DNA of 64,000 nt from Prasinococcaceae sp. CCMP 1430 (GCA_013416795.1 RQSC01001393.1:99721-163720), one strand, 5' to 3'. Shown: positions 17,948-50,370, counted from the stretch's first letter. The notes: generated by a model not told the origin, from the sequence alone. Made by a program: numbers and translations.

Positions 17948-18060
17948 GCGCCCATCAAAACGCAGGCGCGATGGGTTGCGCCCGTCAAAACGCAGGCGCG
18001 ATGGAGTGCGCCCATCAAAACGCAGGCGCGATGGGTTGCGCCCGTCAAAACGCAGGCGCG
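17948..18060. repeat. 30-bp tandem repeat, ~4 units
   Basis: Unit GCGCCCRTCAAAACGCAGGCGCGATGG(GT/AG)T with period 30; a further partial copy at 18241. Confidence 0.93.
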
Positions 18061-18493
18061 AGGCTGTGCACCCCATCAGCTAGAAGCGCGCTGGTTCTCT
18101 CTTCGGGGAAAGAACCACTCTCATCCCGGTTCACTCACGGGAAAATCCCGATCGCGCCGCGCCCGTCCCCGGAGAGGCACGCGCGGACCAGGTTCGTCAT
18201 CCGCGAGCCCGTCGCAGCGCGGGCGCGATGGTGTGTCTGCCCATCAAAACGCATGCGTGCCCCTCCGGGCGAGCTTCGGGGCGCGCGCGGCGGCGGCGAG
18301 TCAGCAGCGGCAGCGCGCGCGGGCCGCGGGGTGGGGTTTGCGGAAGCCGATTTCGGCGCGCGCGCTTTTTTTTTGAAACAGACGTTTTTTTTGAAACGGA
18401 CTTTTTTTTTTGGAGGGCGTCGGCCGGTCGGCGCGCGAGGCGGCCTCGCGCGCCGCCGCTCGAGGACGCACACGAAGCGATCGGGCTCTCACC

Positions 18494-19633
<1,140 letters not shown>

Positions 19634-31200: not shown

Positions 31201-33142
31201 ACAACACCGCGTCCTCATCAGGGTCGTACGCCTCGTAGAGAAGGTCCGCTTCGTCGCCCTCGCGCACGCTTAGCTCGGCGACCGGAGTGGCGATCCAGAT
31301 TGGCGGCCGGTTGCGCTCAGCGAGGGACTCGCCCGTCTGGACGTCGACGCCGGTAGACACCGTCGCGGCGATGAGCCCCTCAACAGCGCCTTCGAATGCG
31401 GCCCGAGCAGACGCAATGGCTACGCTGGTGGCGTCGAACCTCTCCCCTTCTCCCTCTTCGTACTCGTACGCGCCAATGGAGGAGTCGTCGTCCTTGGGTG
31501 AGTACTCGAAGATAGTGTCATTTGTCAGCTCAGCGAGACGTTCGAGGCGGTCAATGTGCAGCTCCGCGGCGACCGCGTCCGCCTCGATACCCCACGTGCG
31601 CACTCCTGCTGGCAGCGCGGCTCCGGCTTGCACGGCAAGCTGCACGCCGAGACCGATGCGAGCATACACATTCCCCACCAGACGCGCGTGTGCCACATCG
31701 ACATCCTCCAGCGACAAGTACGTAGCGTCCGCATCAGTCGCGTTGGTGTCACGATCCCTCACAGCTTCGGACGGGGGCGCTGGCTGCTCCGCCGGGGTGC
31801 TCGCACCCCCCTCCGGATCTCCCTCCTCCGTTTGCTCGCACATCACAGAAGAATTGCCGCCCGCTTGTGCCGACGCGTCGACGTCGCACGGTGGCAACGG
31901 CGGTGGTGCGGGTGGACCGTACTTTTCTGGATCCAGAAGCTCGTGCAGGTAGTCGCCGGGCTGCGCGTCCAGCAGCGGGTCGCTCAAGCCGCTGATGACA
32001 AGCGCACCCGCGAGCATGAGCGCCTCACACGCACGAGCGTGTAACTCTCCACCACCGATCACGTACACGACAGCAGGCAGCTGGCCCGCGAGTCCCGCTC
32101 GCGAGGCGAGGAGCCCCACGAGCGACGCACCGTAGGGTGCGGAGGCCGCCGTGCGATCGGAGCTCAGCAGCTCGCCCGCCACCGCGTCGGCGCGCCCGAC
32201 AGCGCCCAAGTCGTACACAAAGCAGCGCGCGCACTGCGCCTGGGCGCCGCCCACGAAGCCGTTCACGTGCCGCAGCACGCGCGCCGAGCTCGCTTCCCCT
32301 CCCGCCACCCCACCGAAGCCATCGCCAACAGCGAGCCCGACCGTCACGACCCCCGCGACGGCGCGCGCCTCACCCGCTAAGTGCCGCGCCAGCTCGCCCG
32401 CGGCGACGCCGGCTGCATACGCACCCGCGTCCTCGCGCAGGATGTGCCACTGCGATCGATAGTAATCGCCGAGCAGCCCGTCCGCTGGCGGCGCGCCCCA
32501 GCCGCCCACCACGAAGAGGTCGCTTGTGCGGATGCCCTCAAGCGAGGCGCCGCGCGGCGGCCCGAACGCGGCGCGCACGCGGGTCGCATCGACCGCGTCG
32601 GCCGCAGCCGCAGCAACAGCAGTGGCATTGCAGCCCTCGAGCGCCGCTGCGTAGCGCGCGTCGCGCGCGGCGTCCTCGCCGCCCTCGGGGACGTCCGAGG
32701 CGCCGAGCGGCGCGAGCAGCGCGTCGGCATCCACTTCAATGGCGTCGCACCCGGCGAAGGCGCACGCCGCGCGCGCGCCCCGAAGAGCCTCCACGGAGGC
32801 CAGCGCGCGCCGCGCGAAGGTGGCATTTTGCGCCTGCATGGGCACGCGCGCGGCGCGCAACCGAGGGGGCGACACGCCGCTCGCGTTGCGGCGGGAGCGC
32901 GCGAGGGGGTCAGCACGGTGCGCCGCCGGCGCCTCCGCACCCGCAGCAGCTCGGACGCGGCGCTCCCCGGCGTGCCAATCCGCGCGCCGCGGAGGCGGCG
33001 CGCTCGAGCTCCCGCTCGACGCTGCCGGCGCCCGCGCACCTCCGAGTATCCTTCCGCCCCGCGTTCCGCTCCCAGCCGCTCGCCGACGACCACGCACAGC
33101 CTGAGCTCGCCGGCCGCTCGCGCGGCCGCCGGCGGCGACCCC
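25277..33142 (-). CDS. Giant (>2400 aa) cell-surface membrane protein: cadherin-like/He_PIG repeats, PKD/REJ-like repeats, multipass TM region, ARM-like C-terminus; 5'-partial
   Basis: An exon from the N gap (33142) to 31137 splices in frame (intron 31136-30990) into a 1900-aa ORF. Three N.P...E...A.DP(D/E)...Y....L.W repeats, two F.PD..GSY.L.V repeats, several hydrophobic helices, and helical ARM-like repeats. Confidence 0.75.
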
Positions 33143-33354
33143 NNNNNNNNNNNNNNNNNNNNNNNNNNNNNNNNNNNNNNNNNNNNNNNNNNNNNNNNNN
33201 NNNNNNNNNNNNNNNNNNNNNNNNNNNNNNNNNNNNNNNNNNNNNNNNNNNNNNNNNNNNNNNNNNNNNNNNNNNNNNNNNNNNNNNNNNNNNNNNNNNN
33301 NNNNNNNNNNNNNNNNNNNNNNNNNNNNNNNNNNNNNNNNNNNNNNNNNNNNNN
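33143..33354. other. Assembly gap (N run)
   Basis: 212 n; hides the last SERF exon and the 5' end of the large membrane-protein gene. Confidence 1.
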
Positions 33355-33491
33355 GGGGGCGAGGCGCGTCTCGGAGGGTGTGGGGAGGGCGGCGGGCTGT
33401 GTGTGGGGGGGGGGGGTGGGCGCTCGCGCGCGCGCTCGCGCGCTCGCGCGCGCGCTCACGCGCACGCTCGCTCGCGCTCGCGCGCGCGCAC

Positions 33492-34711: not shown

Positions 34712-35091
34712 CGAAACGAATCGTCGCATTCGATTTCGACGCACGCTCCTTACGTCGGCTGCTTTTCCGGATTCATTGGTCATTTGCGCGGCAACAAGCG
34801 GTTTTTTTCGGCCTCGAAAAGATGTTGAGAAAGGTCTCTAAACGAACGTTCGGAGGCGATTTCGACGCACGCTCCTTTCGCCGGCTGCTTTTTCCGGATT
34901 GAGCGGGCATTCGCGCGGCAACAAGCGTTTTTCCCGGCCTCGAAGAGATGCTGTAAAAGGTCTCGAAACGAACGTTCGGAGGCGGTTTCGGCGCACAGCG
35001 CCCCCCGTCGGCTGCTTTTCCGGATTGATTTTGCATTTGCGCGGCAACAAGCGTTTTTTTGTCGGCCTCGAAGAGATGCTGTGAGAGCGCG
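34712..35091. repeat. ~126-bp tandem repeat, 3 units
   Basis: Units start at 34712, 34838 and 34964, sharing AAACGAA...GTCGGCTGCTTTTCCGGATT...GCGCGGCAACAAGCG...GGCCTCGAA.AGATG; partial copy at ~35239. Confidence 0.9.
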
Positions 35092-35101
35092 CGAAACGGA
35101 A

Positions 35102-35231
35102 AAATTCCAGTTTCCGAGATTTTTGGGGCCAGAAATCCCAGTTTTCGAGGTTACAGTACGCTAATAAATTTGGTGCCGAAAATCTCGAAAACTGGAATTT
35201 CTGGTCCCAAAAACCTCGGAAACTGGAATTT
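35102..35231. repeat. 48-bp inverted repeat with a 34-bp loop (MITE-like hairpin)
   Basis: Left arm 35102-35149 and right arm 35184-35231 are reverse complements with about 3 mismatches; each arm contains two copies of AAT(T/C)CCAGTTT(C/T)CGAG. Confidence 0.85.
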
Positions 35232-35344
35232 CCCGTCTCGAAACGAACGTTCGGGGTCGGTTTCGGCGCGCGGCGCGCGAACGGCGGCCCGAAGGGGGGG
35301 GGAGCCGCCGGCGTCGCCCCGCCCGCGTGGCACACACGGCGCGC

Positions 35345-36176
35345 NNNNNNNNNNNNNNNNNNNNNNNNNNNNNNNNNNNNNNNNNNNNNNNNNNNNNNNN
35401 NNNNNNNNNNNNNNNNNNNNNNNNNNNNNNNNNNNNNNNNNNNNNNNNNNNNNNNNNNNNNNNNNNNNNNNNNNNNNNNNNNNNNNNNNNNNNNNNNNNN
35501 NNNNNNNNNNNNNNNNNNNNNNNNNNNNNNNNNNNNNNNNNNNNNNNNNNNNNNNNNNNNNNNNNNNNNNNNNNNNNNNNNNNNNNNNNNNNNNNNNNNN
35601 NNNNNNNNNNNNNNNNNNNNNNNNNNNNNNNNNNNNNNNNNNNNNNNNNNNNNNNNNNNNNNNNNNNNNNNNNNNNNNNNNNNNNNNNNNNNNNNNNNNN
35701 NNNNNNNNNNNNNNNNNNNNNNNNNNNNNNNNNNNNNNNNNNNNNNNNNNNNNNNNNNNNNNNNNNNNNNNNNNNNNNNNNNNNNNNNNNNNNNNNNNNN
35801 NNNNNNNNNNNNNNNNNNNNNNNNNNNNNNNNNNNNNNNNNNNNNNNNNNNNNNNNNNNNNNNNNNNNNNNNNNNNNNNNNNNNNNNNNNNNNNNNNNNN
35901 NNNNNNNNNNNNNNNNNNNNNNNNNNNNNNNNNNNNNNNNNNNNNNNNNNNNNNNNNNNNNNNNNNNNNNNNNNNNNNNNNNNNNNNNNNNNNNNNNNNN
36001 NNNNNNNNNNNNNNNNNNNNNNNNNNNNNNNNNNNNNNNNNNNNNNNNNNNNNNNNNNNNNNNNNNNNNNNNNNNNNNNNNNNNNNNNNNNNNNNNNNNN
36101 NNNNNNNNNNNNNNNNNNNNNNNNNNNNNNNNNNNNNNNNNNNNNNNNNNNNNNNNNNNNNNNNNNNNNNNNNNNN
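35345..36176. other. Assembly gap (N run)
   Basis: 832 n; probably hides the first exon of the Alfin-like gene. Confidence 1.
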
Positions 36177-43431: not shown

Positions 43432-43865
43432 CCGCTTCAACCGACAGAGCGGTGGCAGTGCGCACGAAGAGACGTACCGTAGCTAGAAAGCGAGAGCGCG
43501 GTCGTCGTGGCACGCGCGCAGGCTCGCTCGCTCGCTCGCTCGCTTGCGCTCGCGTTCGGGGAACCGAAAGCGAAAGCGAAAGCGAAAAAAGTGAGCCAAC
43601 GGACCACACAGTGATTAAACAACAAGAAGTATTATCAATGTATCCAACGGGCCAAGCACAGAGGCGACTGACGTGTGGCGTGTGGCGGGGAGGGGGGAGC
43701 CGCGGGGGCGTCGCACGGCCCTCTTACACCACGAGGTGGCCGCCCCCGCGCCCCCGCGGCTGCTTCTGGGGGCGCGGCGCGCCAGGCCGCGCACGCGCGC
43801 GCACGCAGCGCGCGCGCGCGCGCGCGCGCGCGAGTGCGCGTGCGACGCGCGCGCGAACGCCTCCC

Positions 43866-46800
43866 TCACAGGGGCAGGCGCCGCGTGACGGCGTCCATCC
43901 ATCGCCGCTTGCCGCTGATTATCCACCGCCGGGCCTGCGATGCTGTCCTCGGCCGCTCGTACGGACTCGCGCGCGCCTTGAGGAGCCGATCTTCGGCAGC
44001 CGCGATCCGCGCGCCGAGCAGTCTGGCGCGCGCCTCGCCTGCGTCGGCGGCGCCCGAGCGCGACGCAGCGAACTCCGCGAGGAACGCCTCGAAGGAAAAG
44101 GCGAAGAGGACGCGTGTAGCAAGCACCGCCGGCGCCGCGTACGCCACGAAGAAGAACACCTGCGCGGGCTCGCTCGTGCCGGCCACCATGCCATCTTTGA
44201 CGATGTGCCAGTCGTTGCCGCACAGCAGCTCGAAGAGCGTCACCAGCGCGCTCGGCCAGTCGGCGAACGAGTTGCGGAAGTACGCGCGCGCTTCGTACTC
44301 GGTGCCGGCGAGCGCCGGGTTCAAAGCTTCGCACGGTACCACGCCCTCTCCGCCGCGAACGTAGTGCAGGTAGCACGGGCGGTCCGACACGCGCTCGAGC
44401 ATCCGCTCGACCATGACGCCATCATCCGCGTCTAGCCAAAGGCCCGTTTCTGTGTCGGTGCACACCAGCGTCCGGTTGGCCTCGCCACCGAGGTACGGCA
44501 CCTCCACGGCCCTCAGGGCGCGGTCACAGTACTCCAGGAGATCAGACGCCTCAGGCACGAGCCGCACCGCACCGCGGAACACGGCTACACCAGTGAGCGC
44601 CACGATGTGCAAGAAGCCGCCGATAGCCAGCGCGAACGCGCACATGACACTCGCAAGCCCCTGAAAGGCACGCCCGAGGGTGCGGAAGCCCACCACCGAC
44701 GAGCCCATGTTGACGATGCGCAGACACCGCAGCAGAGGGAAAAAGTTGACGAAGCCAGCGCTCGCACCAGCCGCCTTCGCCACGTCCAGCACGGCCGACA
44801 CCACGATCACCGCCGCGTCGAGCGTGCCCCACAGCTCGAGCCTCAGAACGGGGTGCACGCGCGCGGCAATCTTGGCGGCCAGCTCGAGCGCGAACGCCAT
44901 CGAGAACAACACCGCAACGGCATTTACGGCCGTGCTGTCGTCATCGCGCCGGTGGACGCCCACGCGCACGGCGATCAGCGCACCCTGCATGATGAGCGTG
45001 AGAATGACGCCCACCTCGAAGGCCGGACGTGTCACCAAAGTTCGCAATGGCTTCAACCGAGCGGCCGTCTCCTTCGTCGGACGCGTCAGCGTGCCCTCAG
45101 CGCATTCGAGGCGCATGGGGTGCTCCAGGAGTTCGACCAGGCTGCCAAACTGCTGGGCCGATAACATGAGGTGACTGTCGGGCATATGCGTCTCATCCGT
45201 GCCGTTCGCTCCATTCGTGCCCTCACCAGCCGCAGTCGTGACCCCGGGTAACGCGTTGGCACCCACGGTGGCGCTACCCGGCCTTGCCCTGGCCGCTAGG
45301 AAGAGGACGTCGGCAAGCTCTGCTGGCGTGGAGCTCGAGCGCATTGGTTGGCGGGAAGCGGCGTTGAAGCTAGTCAAGCGCCTCAGCGAATGACGCGCGT
45401 CGGCGCCGATGCTGCCATCAGATCCCGCCGCCGCATCCGCTGCCTGCAGCGCGAGGGTTGCGAAGCGGGAGTCGATCTCCTCGAGGTGGGAGAAGACCCG
45501 ACGCCACGCGTACAGAGGCAGCCCGGAAGGCCTGCCGTCCTCGCTGTCGCCGCAGGCCTCAGTCTTGCCACCCTCGCCTTCGTGTAAAGGAAGGCCACTG
45601 CTGAGCTCCTCAAATATGGCGTCGAGCACCTCCTTGCGCCTTCGTGCCAGCGTTGCAGCGCGGGTCTGGCATGAGCCCACCAGCGCGGCATAGACGGCTG
45701 CGTCGAGGAAGAAAGTGAGCACGAATGCTGTGAGCACCACAAAGGCCATGAAGAAGAGCGCGTTGGGCCACGCGTACGAGTAGTATGGCATCATGACGGC
45801 TGGGAAGTTCGAGAGCGTCGATGCCACTCCGAAAGACTCGAGTGCATCGTGATAGGAGCCGAAGCCCTCGAAAACGAAGCCCGCGGAGTCAGTGAGCGTG
45901 CTGTAGCCAGCGTACCCCACCAGCGCGAACAGAACGGCCGCGGCAGCAACCACGGCCATTACGCGCAAGACCGCCGGCGCGCATCGCGCAATCGTGGCGG
46001 AGACGAAACGCGACTGCGTCGTAGAACCCATGAGGAGCACCGCGCGGATGTATCGCCCCGGGCGCCACACGACGTAGTCGATGTACTCTTTCTCCGACAC
46101 GCCCGCCGCATGCACGACAAGCAATATTGCGCCCTCTATTGCGGCCAGGACCACCGCAGCCGTCTTGAGCTTTGGCCACACGCCCGCGTCGGTGCGCGCG
46201 CGCATGGCGAGGAAACAGTCGGCGCCATGGACGCCCAGCAGTAGTAGCTCCACGAAAAGGATCCACGCATCTGCGCTCGGCGACCATTTCGCACCACCGA
46301 GGATGCCCGCCGGTCGCGGTCGCTCCCACACGCACAGGCTGATTAGAAGCAGTGTGGAGGCGACGACGCACGTGCGCCACGCGCGACTCGTGTATACGCG
46401 GTAGGACGGCAGCATGGCCGCGCTGAGCAACGGAGGGGGGAGGCCGCGATGTAGGGCCCACAGGTGGACTGCCGCCTGTCGCTCCCTAGGCAGGTCGTCG
46501 GCGAACACGACCTTCTTGCCGACGGCGGCCGCAGCGGCGGCGAGCACACGCTTGCGCGATGCCTGCGCCTTTGCGGGCGTATCCGCCAGCGGCACCGCGC
46601 ACAGCGGGGTCGACGGCACTGAGACAGCTCTCAGGCTCGCGCGTGGCGTGTTCTGAGGGCTTGGATAATCGCTATCCCCAGCCGAAAAATCAACCGTGGG
46701 GGGGCTTTCGACGCACACTTCCTCGCCTGCATCAGCCGCGAGAGGCACGGCCCGCGAGGGCAAGTCCTCCGTAGCAGCACGCGCTTCCATGTTTCGCGCA

Positions 46801-49231
46801 GCAACTCCCTCGTCGAGCTCTTTGAGCGCCGTTGCCATGTCCTTCATCTCTGCTGCCCTCTTCAAGTCGTCTGGGTCCTCCTCAGGGCCGTCATATTTGA
46901 GAGTGCCTTGCATGGCCTTGCCCTCGACGACCCAATGCATCAGGTTCTTGCGGGTTACGATGCCGATTGGCACCCATCGGCCGTCCACCACCGGGAGGTG
47001 GCGCATGCCGAGCCGCCGGAAAAGGCGGATCGATCGGCCCAGCGCGTCGCCCGCCCGCACAGCTACCGGCGAACCGTCCATGACATCCGCAACAGTCGCG
47101 TCAGGATCAACCTGCACGCGCTCGAGCATCGACGTGCTCACGACACCCACGAGCGCGCCATCGCGGTCGACTACCGGAAAGCCGTTGTGCGACGTGGTGC
47201 GCTTCGCAGCGAGTGCCTCCTGCACTGAGTCGGTCTCACGCATGCACACCGCAGGTGCCGCCATGACGTCACCCACACACGCCCGTTCCTGCAATTCGTT
47301 GGGATGATCGCCCACCACGGGAAGGCACTTGAGATGAATGAATTCATGGTAGAGTCCGTCGTTGAACAGATTGCCGACAATGACGGCCGCGATGGTCGCG
47401 CATGCGATGGGCGGCGCCAGCAGCAGCGCCGACGTGAGCTCCACGACGAGGATCGTAAAGAAAAGCATGATGCGCCCCGAGCCCGCCATCATGGCCGCTG
47501 CACCGACGATGGCCATGACGCCAGGCTCCACTGGCACACCCAGCGGCACACAGGCGAGGCCCATGAGACGCCCAAGGCACGCGCCCATGAAGATGTTGGG
47601 CACCACGAGGCCCGTCGGCAGCGCGATGCCGACCGTGATCACAGCCATGGTGAAGTACAGAACGAAGGTGACCAGCACCTCGTGCCATGCCACCGCGCGC
47701 GTGAGGCCCTCGCTGAACAGCAGCTTGATCGCCTCGGGCGCCGGCACGAAGAGCAGACTGGCAGCGGCATTGTACTCACCCTCAGGACATGCGTACTGTG
47801 ACAGGAGGTGCTCGTCGATGCTGAATTGCTCCCAGCCCTCGACGTAGGTCGCCTGGTAGGGTTTCTGGTCGGAGTCCTCGTACTTCTCGGGCGTCATGAG
47901 TGTGTGGTTGAAGAGCTCCGAGCCCGGATAGACGAGCTTGTCGACGATCTGGCTCTCAACGTGCGGGTTGGGGCAGAAGTCGCTAGTGGTGGCCTTGTCG
48001 TACACCCTGCCCGCAGTCTTGTGGAGGCACGGGAAGGCGGAGGGCGCCCACGTGAACAGGCTGGCCGTGACCAGCCCGACCAGCACGACCTCGACCACGC
48101 GCCGCAGGGGCATCTTGGCAGTCACGTTCGCCATGCGCCATGTGTTTATCTTGACGGCAAGCCAGTTGAAGAGCGCCCCCATGCAGCCGCAGATGGCCCC
48201 AAGCAGGATGAAGATGGGGATGGCCCACCACGCATAGAAGCACTCGGGATGCTCGCTGATGTTGCCGACGTTGAACTTCACGTTCAGGGTGGTGTCGCCG
48301 GCCTGCGCTGCCTGCAGCCAGTACGACGTCCAGTATGCCGCCACACACGCGATGAAGGTCTTGTGAATCTCCTCGACGCTCACGTACGCCAGATCCTCGA
48401 GGACGAGCGCGACGCCGCTGGCGGGCGCCAGGAAGGCGGCGGCGACGCCCGCACCCGCACCGAGCGCGACCATGTTGCGCAGGACGTGGCCGGACAGGCG
48501 CAGCCTGGGGAAGAGGCCGCACATCGCGCGCCCCACGCAGGCGCCGATGTGGATGACGGGCCCCTCCGGCCCACACGCCAGGCCGCTGGCGACGGCGAAG
48601 GTCACGCCGACTGTCGTGGCGAGGCCCGTCTGCCAGTCCACGTGCCCTTCCAGTCGCACGCCGTTGACGTACGCCATGACGCCGGGGATGCCGCTCGACT
48701 CGGCTGCAGGCTTCCAGAGCACCATCGCCACGCCGGGCAGAGTGATGACCACCAGCGCTGCCGCGTACACCAGGTAGCCCCGCACCATATCGGCCCCGCC
48801 CTCCGAGCCCTCGATGAAGCTGTTGGCAAGCTTGAACTTGAGCTTGGTGAGCTTGTACGAGAAGAGGTGAATCAGGTAGGACAGCAGGCCCACGCCCACG
48901 CCCACCGCGGCCGCGATCAGCCAGCTCGCTGTGGCGTGCTCGCCGCCAATCACGCCGAAACGCGCACTGTACCGCCGCTCCACGTGCGACTTGGACTCGA
49001 ATGTGGCGATGCGCGCGTGCGTGGCGCGGGCGTGCTCGCCGTCCGCCGCGTACGCCGCCGCGCGCAGCCCGCCGAACGCGCTCAGCCCAGAGCCGCGGCG
49101 GTGGCCGCCGCCGGCTGCCTTGCAGCCTTGCGCAGGGCGCCCTTGGGCGAGCCCGTGCCGTCCGCGGGGCCGCCGGCCGGGTCATCCGCGCCCGACGCCC
49201 GCGGCGCTGGCGGCACGGGCACGTCCGCCAT
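43866..49231 (-). CDS. CLC chloride/proton exchanger with 2 CBS domains fused to a two-pore channel (TPC)-like module
   Basis: One stop-free 1705-aa ORF (48983-43866). CLC motifs SSGIP, GPEGP, LEDL, PTGLVVP, GLY; two CBS domains; then two 6-TM channel repeats with filters STLSNFP and LLCGNDW. The likely ATG at 49231 needs a frameshift near 49120. Confidence 0.88.
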
Positions 49232-50370
49232 CGCGCGCTTGCGGGGCCTCGCGCACGCTGCCCGCCACTGGGAGTCCGAGAGGGGATGGCCAAGGGGTAG
49301 CAGCGGCAGCGGGCTTCAGGGAGCTTCGGCGGCGAGCGGCAGCAGCCCGTGCGCACGCCGCCGGCCCACGCCGCCGGCGCACGCCCGGCGACGGCGGCGA
49401 CGCGGCCACGCCGCCCCCCAACCCTTCCACCCCCCGCCCCCCAAAAGCGTGTGCCTCGTATGGCGCCCCCGCACGCGCACACAGCCCCCTCCCCCCACTT
49501 CCGCCGCCGCACTCAGGTCCCAGCACCCACAGCCAACGTACACACTACGCTGCACACTGCACACACACGGGCAGACACGCACGCACGCACGCGCGCGCGC
49601 ACGCGCGCGCAGGTGCGCGCTGGAGCCCCGACCGAGGGAACACGGGGAACGTGCGCCCCTTCCCCCCAGCCGGGCGACCGGCCGGGCCACACGCGTAGCC
49701 AGACGGGCTTGCCAGCCCAGCAGCTTTAGCCAGACGCACCCGGCCGGAGCCCGCTCGAGCGGGCGCTGCCCCGGCCGGGCACGCACGCGCGCGCTTCGGG
49801 GAACCTCGCCTCGAACTCGTTCGCCCAAACCCAAACCCCTACCGCCCGACTTTGCATTCGAATGTTCGTCAAAAATCAAAATATATGAACCCTAAACTAC
49901 AAAGACCTCAAATGCGTCCAAACCTGCCGGGGGAACGCGTCCGGAGCGCGCCCCTCCAGCCCTCGTGGCGGCCCGCGCCGGGGGGCGCTGGGGAGCACAG
50001 CTCTCGCGTCTGAGCGCGTGTCGTCGAGGCGGTGTGTGTGTGGGAGGGGGTGTGCGCAAGGCGCTGCTCGCGCCACTGCCGCCGCGTGCGGGTGGTGGTG
50101 CGCGTGGGCGCACCGGCTCCCGCCCCCCAGCCTCGCAGGAGCGCCCTCGGGACGTGTGCGCCTGCGTGCCACGGGGCGTGGGGTATCCACCGCCCGGTTG
50201 TCGGCACGCGTGCTCTGCCCCTCTCGCCGATGAGGGAGGAGGGGGCGACGCGGGGCTAAGAGGAGAGCCTGACGTGCACGCTTTGCCTGCGTGCGCTCCC
50301 TGGGAACGCGGCCGCGCCGCCGGTGCGCTTGCGAGTCCTGCGCTCTCGAGAGAGCTCGCCGCCGGCGGCG

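Follow-up and report, generated by a model that had tools for sequence, protein, structure and literature searches.

A conserved gene predicted to join a CLC-type exchanger to a two-pore channel in Prasinoderma coloniale and two further marine lineages

The locus and its reading frame

The 64,000-nucleotide (nt) stretch analysed here, assembled from Prasinococcaceae sp. CCMP 1430 (GCA_013416795.1, RQSC01001393.1:99721-163720) and referred to below as the window, carries on its minus strand a single long gene in which a CLC-type anion/H+ exchanger domain and its two CBS domains are followed, in the same frame, by a predicted two-pore channel (TPC). An open reading frame (ORF) scan of the window returned 1705 codons without a stop at 43866..48983, in agreement with a preliminary description made from the DNA sequence alone, which had interpreted this ORF as a single-polypeptide CLC-TPC fusion. 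The features are collected in Table 1, and residue numbers refer to the 1705-codon ORF unless numbering along the 1785 amino acids (aa) of the corrected protein is stated. The same order of domains was found in two other marine lineages, uncultured and diverged from the first, whose proteins P0002 and P0003 are referred to as lineages 2 and 3.

As listed, the 1705-codon ORF begins at a GTG, and its head contains no in-frame ATG. Only an extra 8 nt puts the ATG at 49231 in another frame; alignment to the Tara contig L002 identified this insertion as a tandem duplication (GCAAGGCT|GCAAGGCA). Read-derived contigs of two sequencing runs from two studies (X1 and X5) extend over 43848-49400 with 0 mismatches and lack exactly those eight letters. 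The read-derived contigs and the Tara contig all lack the duplication; the frameshift is therefore confined to this assembly, and an assembly error is its most likely cause. This resolves the frameshift near 49120 that the preliminary description had singled out, and the same read-derived contigs provide the contiguity across the linker on which its single-polypeptide interpretation depended. With the 8 nt removed, the ORF comprises 1785 codons, running from 49231 to 43866 with no stop and no evident intron.

Protein P0001, of 1785 aa and 99% identical to the ORF, has the N-terminus MADVPVPP, corresponding to the ATG at 49231. Its 90%-identity cluster includes the EukProt entry EP00793_Prasinoderma_coloniale (gene model PRCOL_00007259-RA, 1785 aa), a match that assigns the gene, on sequence identity, to the marine green alga Prasinoderma coloniale. 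A report on the P. coloniale genome proposed the phylum Prasinodermophyta on that basis (PMC7455551).

Table 1. Features of the predicted CLC-TPC gene, in window coordinates
Feature	Position	Strand	Basis or remark
Whole CLC-CBS2-TPC coding sequence	43866..49231	minus	As assembled: 1705-codon ORF plus out-of-frame 5' piece
N-terminal cytosolic region	48984..49231	minus	Holds RRGSGLSxFGG
8-nt tandem duplication GCAAGGCT/GCAAGGCA	49117..49131 (placement ambiguous inside range)	minus	Source of the apparent frameshift
CLC transmembrane domain, ORF residues 84-537	47373..48734	minus	Pfam Voltage_CLC
CBS1-CBS2 pair, ORF residues ~561-690	46914..47303	minus	Pfam, CLC-6 alignment
Linker, ORF residues 691-833 (~140 aa)	46485..46913	minus	Between CBS2 and TPC
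TPC N-terminal helix and repeat I (IS1-IS6)	45669..46484	minus	Pfam, PDB search, AF2
Inter-repeat cytosolic region	45084..45668	minus	AF2: four helices at the TPC EF-hand position, with disordered inserts
TPC repeat II (IIS1-IIS6)	44064..45083	minus	Pfam, PDB search, AF2
C-terminal cytosolic tail	43866..44063	minus	Conserved RRW[IM] motif, stop codon

The N-terminal half: transmembrane domain and CBS pair

Pfam assigned Voltage_CLC, CBS and Ion_trans to the ORF, the three families that the preliminary description had expected there. Voltage_CLC (PF00654) matched the transmembrane domain with 205.7 bits against a cut-off of 24.8 (E 1.4e-60), and CBS (PF00571) matched in two stretches with 64.3 bits, ending near residue 686, consistent with the two CBS domains proposed earlier. 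The alignment to CLC-6 spans ORF residues 15-607, with CBS2 aligned to CLC-6 residues 803-861. Among sequences of the PDB, the best matches to the N-terminal half were human CLC-6 (3.4e-66), CLC-7 (3e-58) and Arabidopsis CLC-a (7e-54), with CLC channels scoring far below the exchangers. The nearest free-standing CLC matches are mostly unnamed proteins with 27-35% identity to this half, and the named relatives among them are CLC-6, CLC-7 and plant CLC-d.

The four CLC motifs of the preliminary description (SSGIP, GPEGP, LEDL and GLYH) are all present in the ORF. S97 of SSGIP, the gating E140 of GPEGP and the central Y545 of GLYHE are invariant in all four aligned sequences, the Y545 codon (47349-47351) lying just past the end of the transmembrane domain. 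In the nitrate-selective AtCLC-a, Pro occupies the position held by Ser in the SSGIP-type motif. The LEDL motif had been taken to contain the proton glutamate; the motif and the acidic nature of the site stand, but the residue that aligns with the proton glutamate of CLC-6, the second acidic residue of LE[D/E], is an Asp in P. coloniale (D197, LED) and a Glu in P0002 and P0003 (LEE). The site is thus acidic in all three lineages and is not the Val of CLC channels, and Asp at this internal proton site can be regarded as a conservative change. Alignments and profile matches support a domain of the CLC-6/CLC-7/plant CLC-d type whose transport residues are those expected in a Cl-/H+ exchanger.

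The motif RRGSGLSxFGG (49080-49100, minus strand) is common to P. coloniale and lineage 2 within an N-terminus that is otherwise unconserved. It resembles a basophilic kinase site and may be a regulatory phosphorylation site.

The C-terminal half: a predicted two-pore channel

Ion_trans matched the C-terminal half in two stretches (77.6 bits, E 1.1e-21). A phmmer search of the PDB with this half placed TPC3 first (2.4e-18, in three stretches covering both repeats), followed by TPC1 (1.5e-12) and by AtTPC1 and TPC2 entries (~1e-8); the four-repeat voltage-gated calcium (Cav) and sodium (Nav) channels trailed the TPCs, the best Cav match reaching 5e-7 without a significant stretch. An AlphaFold2 (AF2) model of the C-terminal half only, computed from an alignment of 39 TPC-like sequences, reached a pLDDT of 82 and a pTM of 0.83. 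It contains an N-terminal helix, 12 transmembrane helices and two pairs of pore helices, with a long sixth segment of repeat I (IS6) that runs into four cytosolic helices. A luminal loop of ~105 aa with four invariant Cys lies ahead of the second pore, in repeat II. In a Foldseek search of the PDB, the top 18 matches were all TPC1, TPC2, AtTPC1 or TPC3, with target-normalised TM-scores of 0.64-0.78, as against at most 0.28 for Nav and Cav chains.

The pore sequences were compared with the TPC signatures T-[TS]-A-N-x-P-D-V-M-M-P-A-Y (filter I) and L-F-E-L-x-V-V-N-[NQ]-W-H (filter II). Both signature regions are present and align column for column in the multiple alignment, and the filter triplets themselves vary. 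Filter I reads STLSNFPAVMMPYY in P. coloniale, STLSNFPAVMMPSY in P0002 and the canonical TTANFPDVMMPYY in P0003, the common TPC form being TTANxPDVMMPAY; filter II reads LFELLCGNDWH, LFELLAVHNWH and LFELMVVNNWM, respectively, beside the common LFELxVVN[NQ]WH. The fourth segment of repeat I (IS4, WRPGRYIR) retains R974, R977 and R980 without variation, and its counterpart in repeat II (IIS4, LLRCLRIV in P. coloniale) has two Arg in that species and three in P0003 and is not clearly aligned in P0002. The sequences quoted in the preliminary description for its C-terminal TPC (STLSNFPAVMMPYY, LLRCLRI and LFELLCGNDWH) were thus recovered, and the sequence and model evidence supports a complete two-pore channel of two six-transmembrane (6-TM) repeats, each with a pore loop.

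The degenerate EF-hand remnants also proposed for this half were not recovered. No EF-hand model of Pfam matches the inter-repeat region at E<=0.1, where the AF2 model places the four cytosolic helices. EF-hands are a trait of the plant TPC1 subtype and do not define TPCs generally; given the lack of an EF-hand match, the C-terminal half is classed as a TPC but is kept apart from plant TPC1, the Ca2+-activated subtype.

Continuity and conservation of the fusion

Ala, Pro, Ser and acidic residues abound in the linker, which has the length first estimated and is poorly conserved and variable in length, yet always open and in frame; its composition looks like that of a disordered segment. The full ORF recurs at 99% identity in the Tara/Logan contigs L002, L004 and L005, from several samples. 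Among the diverged lineages, P0002 (1734 aa) is 49% identical to the window protein by BLASTP and 60% in the multiple alignment, and P0003 (1573 aa) is 42-43% identical. Identities of the window protein to P0002 and P0003 are 73/57% in the CLC domain and 75/51% in the CBS pair, fall to 44/24% with many gaps in the linker, and are 54/35% and 53/39% in TPC repeats I and II. The linkers of the three lineages are unequal in length and not alignable: from the last CBS2 motif to the first TPC membrane motif there are 203, 133 and 160 codons, lineage 2 having the shortest linker, with ~70 fewer residues. These stretches contain no in-frame stop, as against one to six stops in each of their other frames. 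From base composition, the probabilities of an open frame over 203, 133 and 160 codons are 0.006, 0.061 and 0.086, and the joint chance of three open in-frame linkers (their product, with 1/3 per lineage for frame) is ~1e-6.

Across the three lineages, each of ~28 environmental variants is full length and free of frameshifts and stops, and their polymorphism is concentrated in the linker. Within P. coloniale, synonymous and non-synonymous differences number 12 and 2 (12:2) for the CLC domain and 12 and 5 (12:5) for the TPC, and both halves are under purifying selection. In lineage 3, a first CLC exon (FESHSLLERLYS..., L003:200-661) lies upstream of the main ORF (L003:813-5570) in a different frame, which implies an intron in the N-terminal region of the CLC and an N-terminally truncated P0003 model; the gene is therefore spliced, yet the CLC-TPC junction lies inside one exon. 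No shared synteny was detected between the flanks of the window and those of L001.

An artefact, whether by mis-assembly, by chance read-through of neighbouring genes or because the gene is dead by frameshift, is extremely improbable in the light of these data. The assembly is flawed nearby (the spurious 8-nt duplication, a 1139-nt poly-C run and a gap), and GC-rich DNA yields long chance ORFs; the window has ~68% GC and many overlapping long ORFs are listed in it, so chance was assessed separately, as above. Against an artefact stand the uninterrupted ORF in many independent metagenome and read-derived contigs, the lack of the frameshift in contigs built from reads, the recurrence of the fusion in two diverged lineages and the very low joint chance of three open linkers. 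With profile, PDB, AF2 and Foldseek assignments for its parts and a frame that is uninterrupted in three diverged lineages, the single-polypeptide frame holds, and we consider it probable that the locus is a real gene, kept across lineages, that encodes a bifunctional CLC-TPC protein.

Transcription, and the case for one bifunctional product

RNA data were evaluated at the level of contigs from two seawater metatranscriptomes (126-259 nt, at least 98% identical). Contigs fall on the CLC half and on the TPC half, and one (46807-47022) extends from CBS2 36 codons into the linker; a single mRNA over both halves is likely. Several observations weigh against a bifunctional product. None of the contigs from the two metatranscriptomes bridges the whole linker (46485-46913), 46485-46806 being uncovered, and the RNA libraries may carry DNA. 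A culture RNA run of 2015 (X24), which shares its organism label with the 2024 DNA runs, contains next to none of the gene's words, and expression in culture is therefore absent or low. Over residues 751-800 the GC bias by codon position is almost flat, and the P. coloniale linker has several Met codons able to start a separate TPC (at 771, 793, 796 and 812 in the 1785-aa numbering). Finally, the TPC half evolves faster than the CLC half, filter II differs by lineage (GND, VHN and VNN) and IIS4 is down to two Arg in P. coloniale; given the variable filter II and the two-Arg IIS4, the channel half may be changing in function.

Some of these observations bear on the main alternative, in which one locus makes two proteins, through an internal transcription or translation start or through cleavage of the linker, so that the fusion serves co-expression and not physical coupling. 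The uncovered linker and its Met codons would fit such a scheme, as would a linker that is long, poorly conserved and disordered-looking. We nevertheless regard it as unlikely, since Met codons are missing from lineage 3 between CBS2 and residue 880, a position that already falls within repeat I, and its TPC therefore lacks an AUG start of its own. Furthermore, the frame has stayed open over 133-203 codons in all three lineages despite the freedom of the sequence, which an internal promoter would not require; cleavage of the linker may nonetheless occur.

Others bear on the alternative that one half has lost transport and persists as a regulatory or scaffold module, for example the TPC as a voltage or lipid sensor for the CLC or the CLC as a targeting or dimerisation module for the channel. 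The variation of filter II, the faster divergence of the TPC half, the loss of the third IIS4 charge in P. coloniale, a filter I triplet that is LSN and not TAN in two lineages, and the Asp at the proton-glutamate position of P. coloniale are all compatible with it. This alternative is nonetheless very unlikely: filter I keeps its invariant Asn, Phe and Pro in the different lineages, in which the pore helices and S6 segments are conserved too, GND also occurs in the free-standing TPC-like protein P0013, and polymorphism is mostly synonymous in both halves. On the CLC side, the other transport residues are all intact, and Asp at the internal site counts as conservative.

Comparison with free-standing and other fused transporters

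The N-terminal half can be compared with CLC-6 and CLC-7, the 2Cl-/H+ exchangers of animal late endosomes and lysosomes, and with plant CLC-d and CLC-a: the alignment takes in the entire transmembrane domain together with the two CBS domains, and the SSGIP Ser, the gating Glu and the central Tyr are retained, as is an acidic residue at the internal proton site. Unlike free-standing CLCs, to which it is only ~27-35% identical, it has an Asp at the P. coloniale proton site and continues for ~1000 residues past CBS2 into a channel. Like TPC1, TPC2, TPC3 and AtTPC1, the C-terminal half has two 6-TM repeats in one chain, and its best sequence and fold matches are TPCs only. It also carries the signature xxNFPxVMMPxY and LFELxxxxWH of the TPC pore, an IS4 with three Arg, and an extended IS6 that leads into a helical cytosolic domain. 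It differs from free-standing TPC-like proteins in overall sequence (18-24% identity over the whole half in the multiple alignment, 24-39% over matched stretches), from TPCs in the P. coloniale filter residues (LSN and GND versus TAN and VNN) and in the long Cys-containing luminal loop of repeat II, and from plant TPC1 in having no recognisable EF-hand Ca2+ loops. In addition, its TPC N-terminus is tethered to a CLC, not free.

The architecture appears to be rare. When 1.84e9 representative proteins were searched by phmmer with the TPC half, P0003 was the only full-length fusion among the matches listed; the other close match, P0004, is a 165-aa fragment 96% identical to the gene's own C-terminus. 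A CLC domain is absent from 14 other TPC-like proteins (969-1783 aa) with long N-terminal extensions, no CLC was found in the flanks of 25 TPC-like loci of JGI metagenomes, and the ESM Atlas contains no mixed CLC/TPC cluster. A word-based search returned no close free-standing homologue of the TPC half. The preliminary description knew of no CLC-TPC fusion, and likewise none was found described in the full-text literature library searched or by a term search of the P. coloniale genome paper; PRCOL_00007259 sits in the published annotation, seemingly unremarked. The fusion is a new architecture built from two well-known families.

A protein of another kind, P0096 (predicted 1308 aa; L006:3001-7446, GCA_002286825.1, NSDO01000121.1; gene model with introns), carries an SLC12-like membrane domain, of the cation-chloride cotransporter family, on the N-terminal side of a TPC-like channel with two repeats. 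In the PDB it matches SLC12A3/NCC (2.4e-19) and KCCs best. It resembles the CLC fusion in joining a predicted chloride-coupled transporter to the N-terminal side of a TPC-like channel, but its transporter is of another family and it is unrelated to the CLC fusion clade. P0096 would be, on sequence, a second, unrelated chloride transporter-TPC fusion.

Other features of the window

A (CG)n-type GC-rich simple repeat at 43782-43847, ~20 nt past the stop codon, is a point at which short-read and metagenome contigs break. The ~5.5 kb Logan contigs L004 and L005 were considered as full-length mRNAs and rejected: their ends fall at this repeat 3' of the stop, which breaks DNA contigs too. Elsewhere in the window, 1139 consecutive C at 18495-19633 are almost certainly an assembly artefact or filler, adjoined by a 30/60-nt tandem repeat at 17948-18078. 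The composition profile has no G or C at ~35400-36150, probably a run of N or scaffold gap, with lower-GC sequence on its flanks (33000-33400 and 35000-35400).

Proposed organization and function

The CBS pair places the C-terminus of a CLC protein in the cytosol, where the N-terminus of a TPC also lies, and a junction between the two is therefore topologically legal. The predicted chain would consist, in order, of a cytosolic N-terminus, the CLC domain, the CBS pair, a ~140-aa cytosolic linker and a complete TPC. CLCs and TPCs are both homodimers, so two chains could assemble into an exchanger dimer with a channel dimer next to it in the same membrane. These might form a closed 2:2 complex tied by two flexible linkers, or the chains might instead be daisy-chained in rows. 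The preliminary description had invoked a shared two-fold symmetry, which requires qualification: with both modules in the same bilayer, their two-fold axes cannot coincide.

CLC-6 and CLC-7, plant CLC-a to CLC-d and TPCs reside in endolysosomal, trans-Golgi network or vacuolar membranes. We infer that the product would remain one uncleaved protein with both halves active in an acidic endomembrane compartment, where it may contribute to the control of membrane potential, luminal Cl-, pH, cation release and osmotic balance. The fusion would fix a 1:1 ratio, co-target both activities and place an electrogenic anion/H+ exchanger beside a cation channel. Exchanger and channel could both shunt the potential set up by the V-ATPase and jointly move salt with little net charge, to the benefit of acidification, Cl- loading, cation release or osmotic control. 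Common regulation of both halves, for example by phosphatidylinositol 3,5-bisphosphate (PI(3,5)P2), is conceivable as speculation, and any coupling of the halves, physical or allosteric, is likewise hypothetical. A stronger proposal, that the fusion is a natural 'Rosetta stone' in which CLC and TPC form an obligate supercomplex with allosteric or electrical coupling of their activities, for instance with the CBS pair or a shared lipid such as PI(3,5)P2 gating both halves, we consider doubtful.

Were that supercomplex real, free-standing CLC-6/7 and TPCs of other eukaryotes, human lysosomes included, would be expected to operate as a pair as well, joined physically or by tight functional coupling. 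Three reports connect CLC-7 and TPC2 in human cells through one lipid and through shared phenotypes: ClC-7 is described as tonically inhibited by PI(3,5)P2 (PMC9242644), a TPC2 gain-of-function variant whose PI(3,5)P2 affinity is higher as causing lysosome acidification and hypopigmentation (PMC9840614), and gain-of-function CLCN7 variants as causing hypopigmentation and lysosomal storage disease (PMC11261146).

Implications

Different dimeric membrane transport proteins are rarely united in a single chain as the two are here, and the fusion raises a clear question of assembly, a closed 2:2 complex versus a chain. A single construct with fixed stoichiometry and proximity would be useful for cryo-electron microscopy and for work on the balance between anion/H+ exchange and cation release. 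In lysosomes and vacuoles, two of the main ion pathways are CLC-6/7-type exchangers and TPCs, and their fusion, maintained by selection in a green lineage that branched early, is independent evolutionary evidence that both transporters work together.

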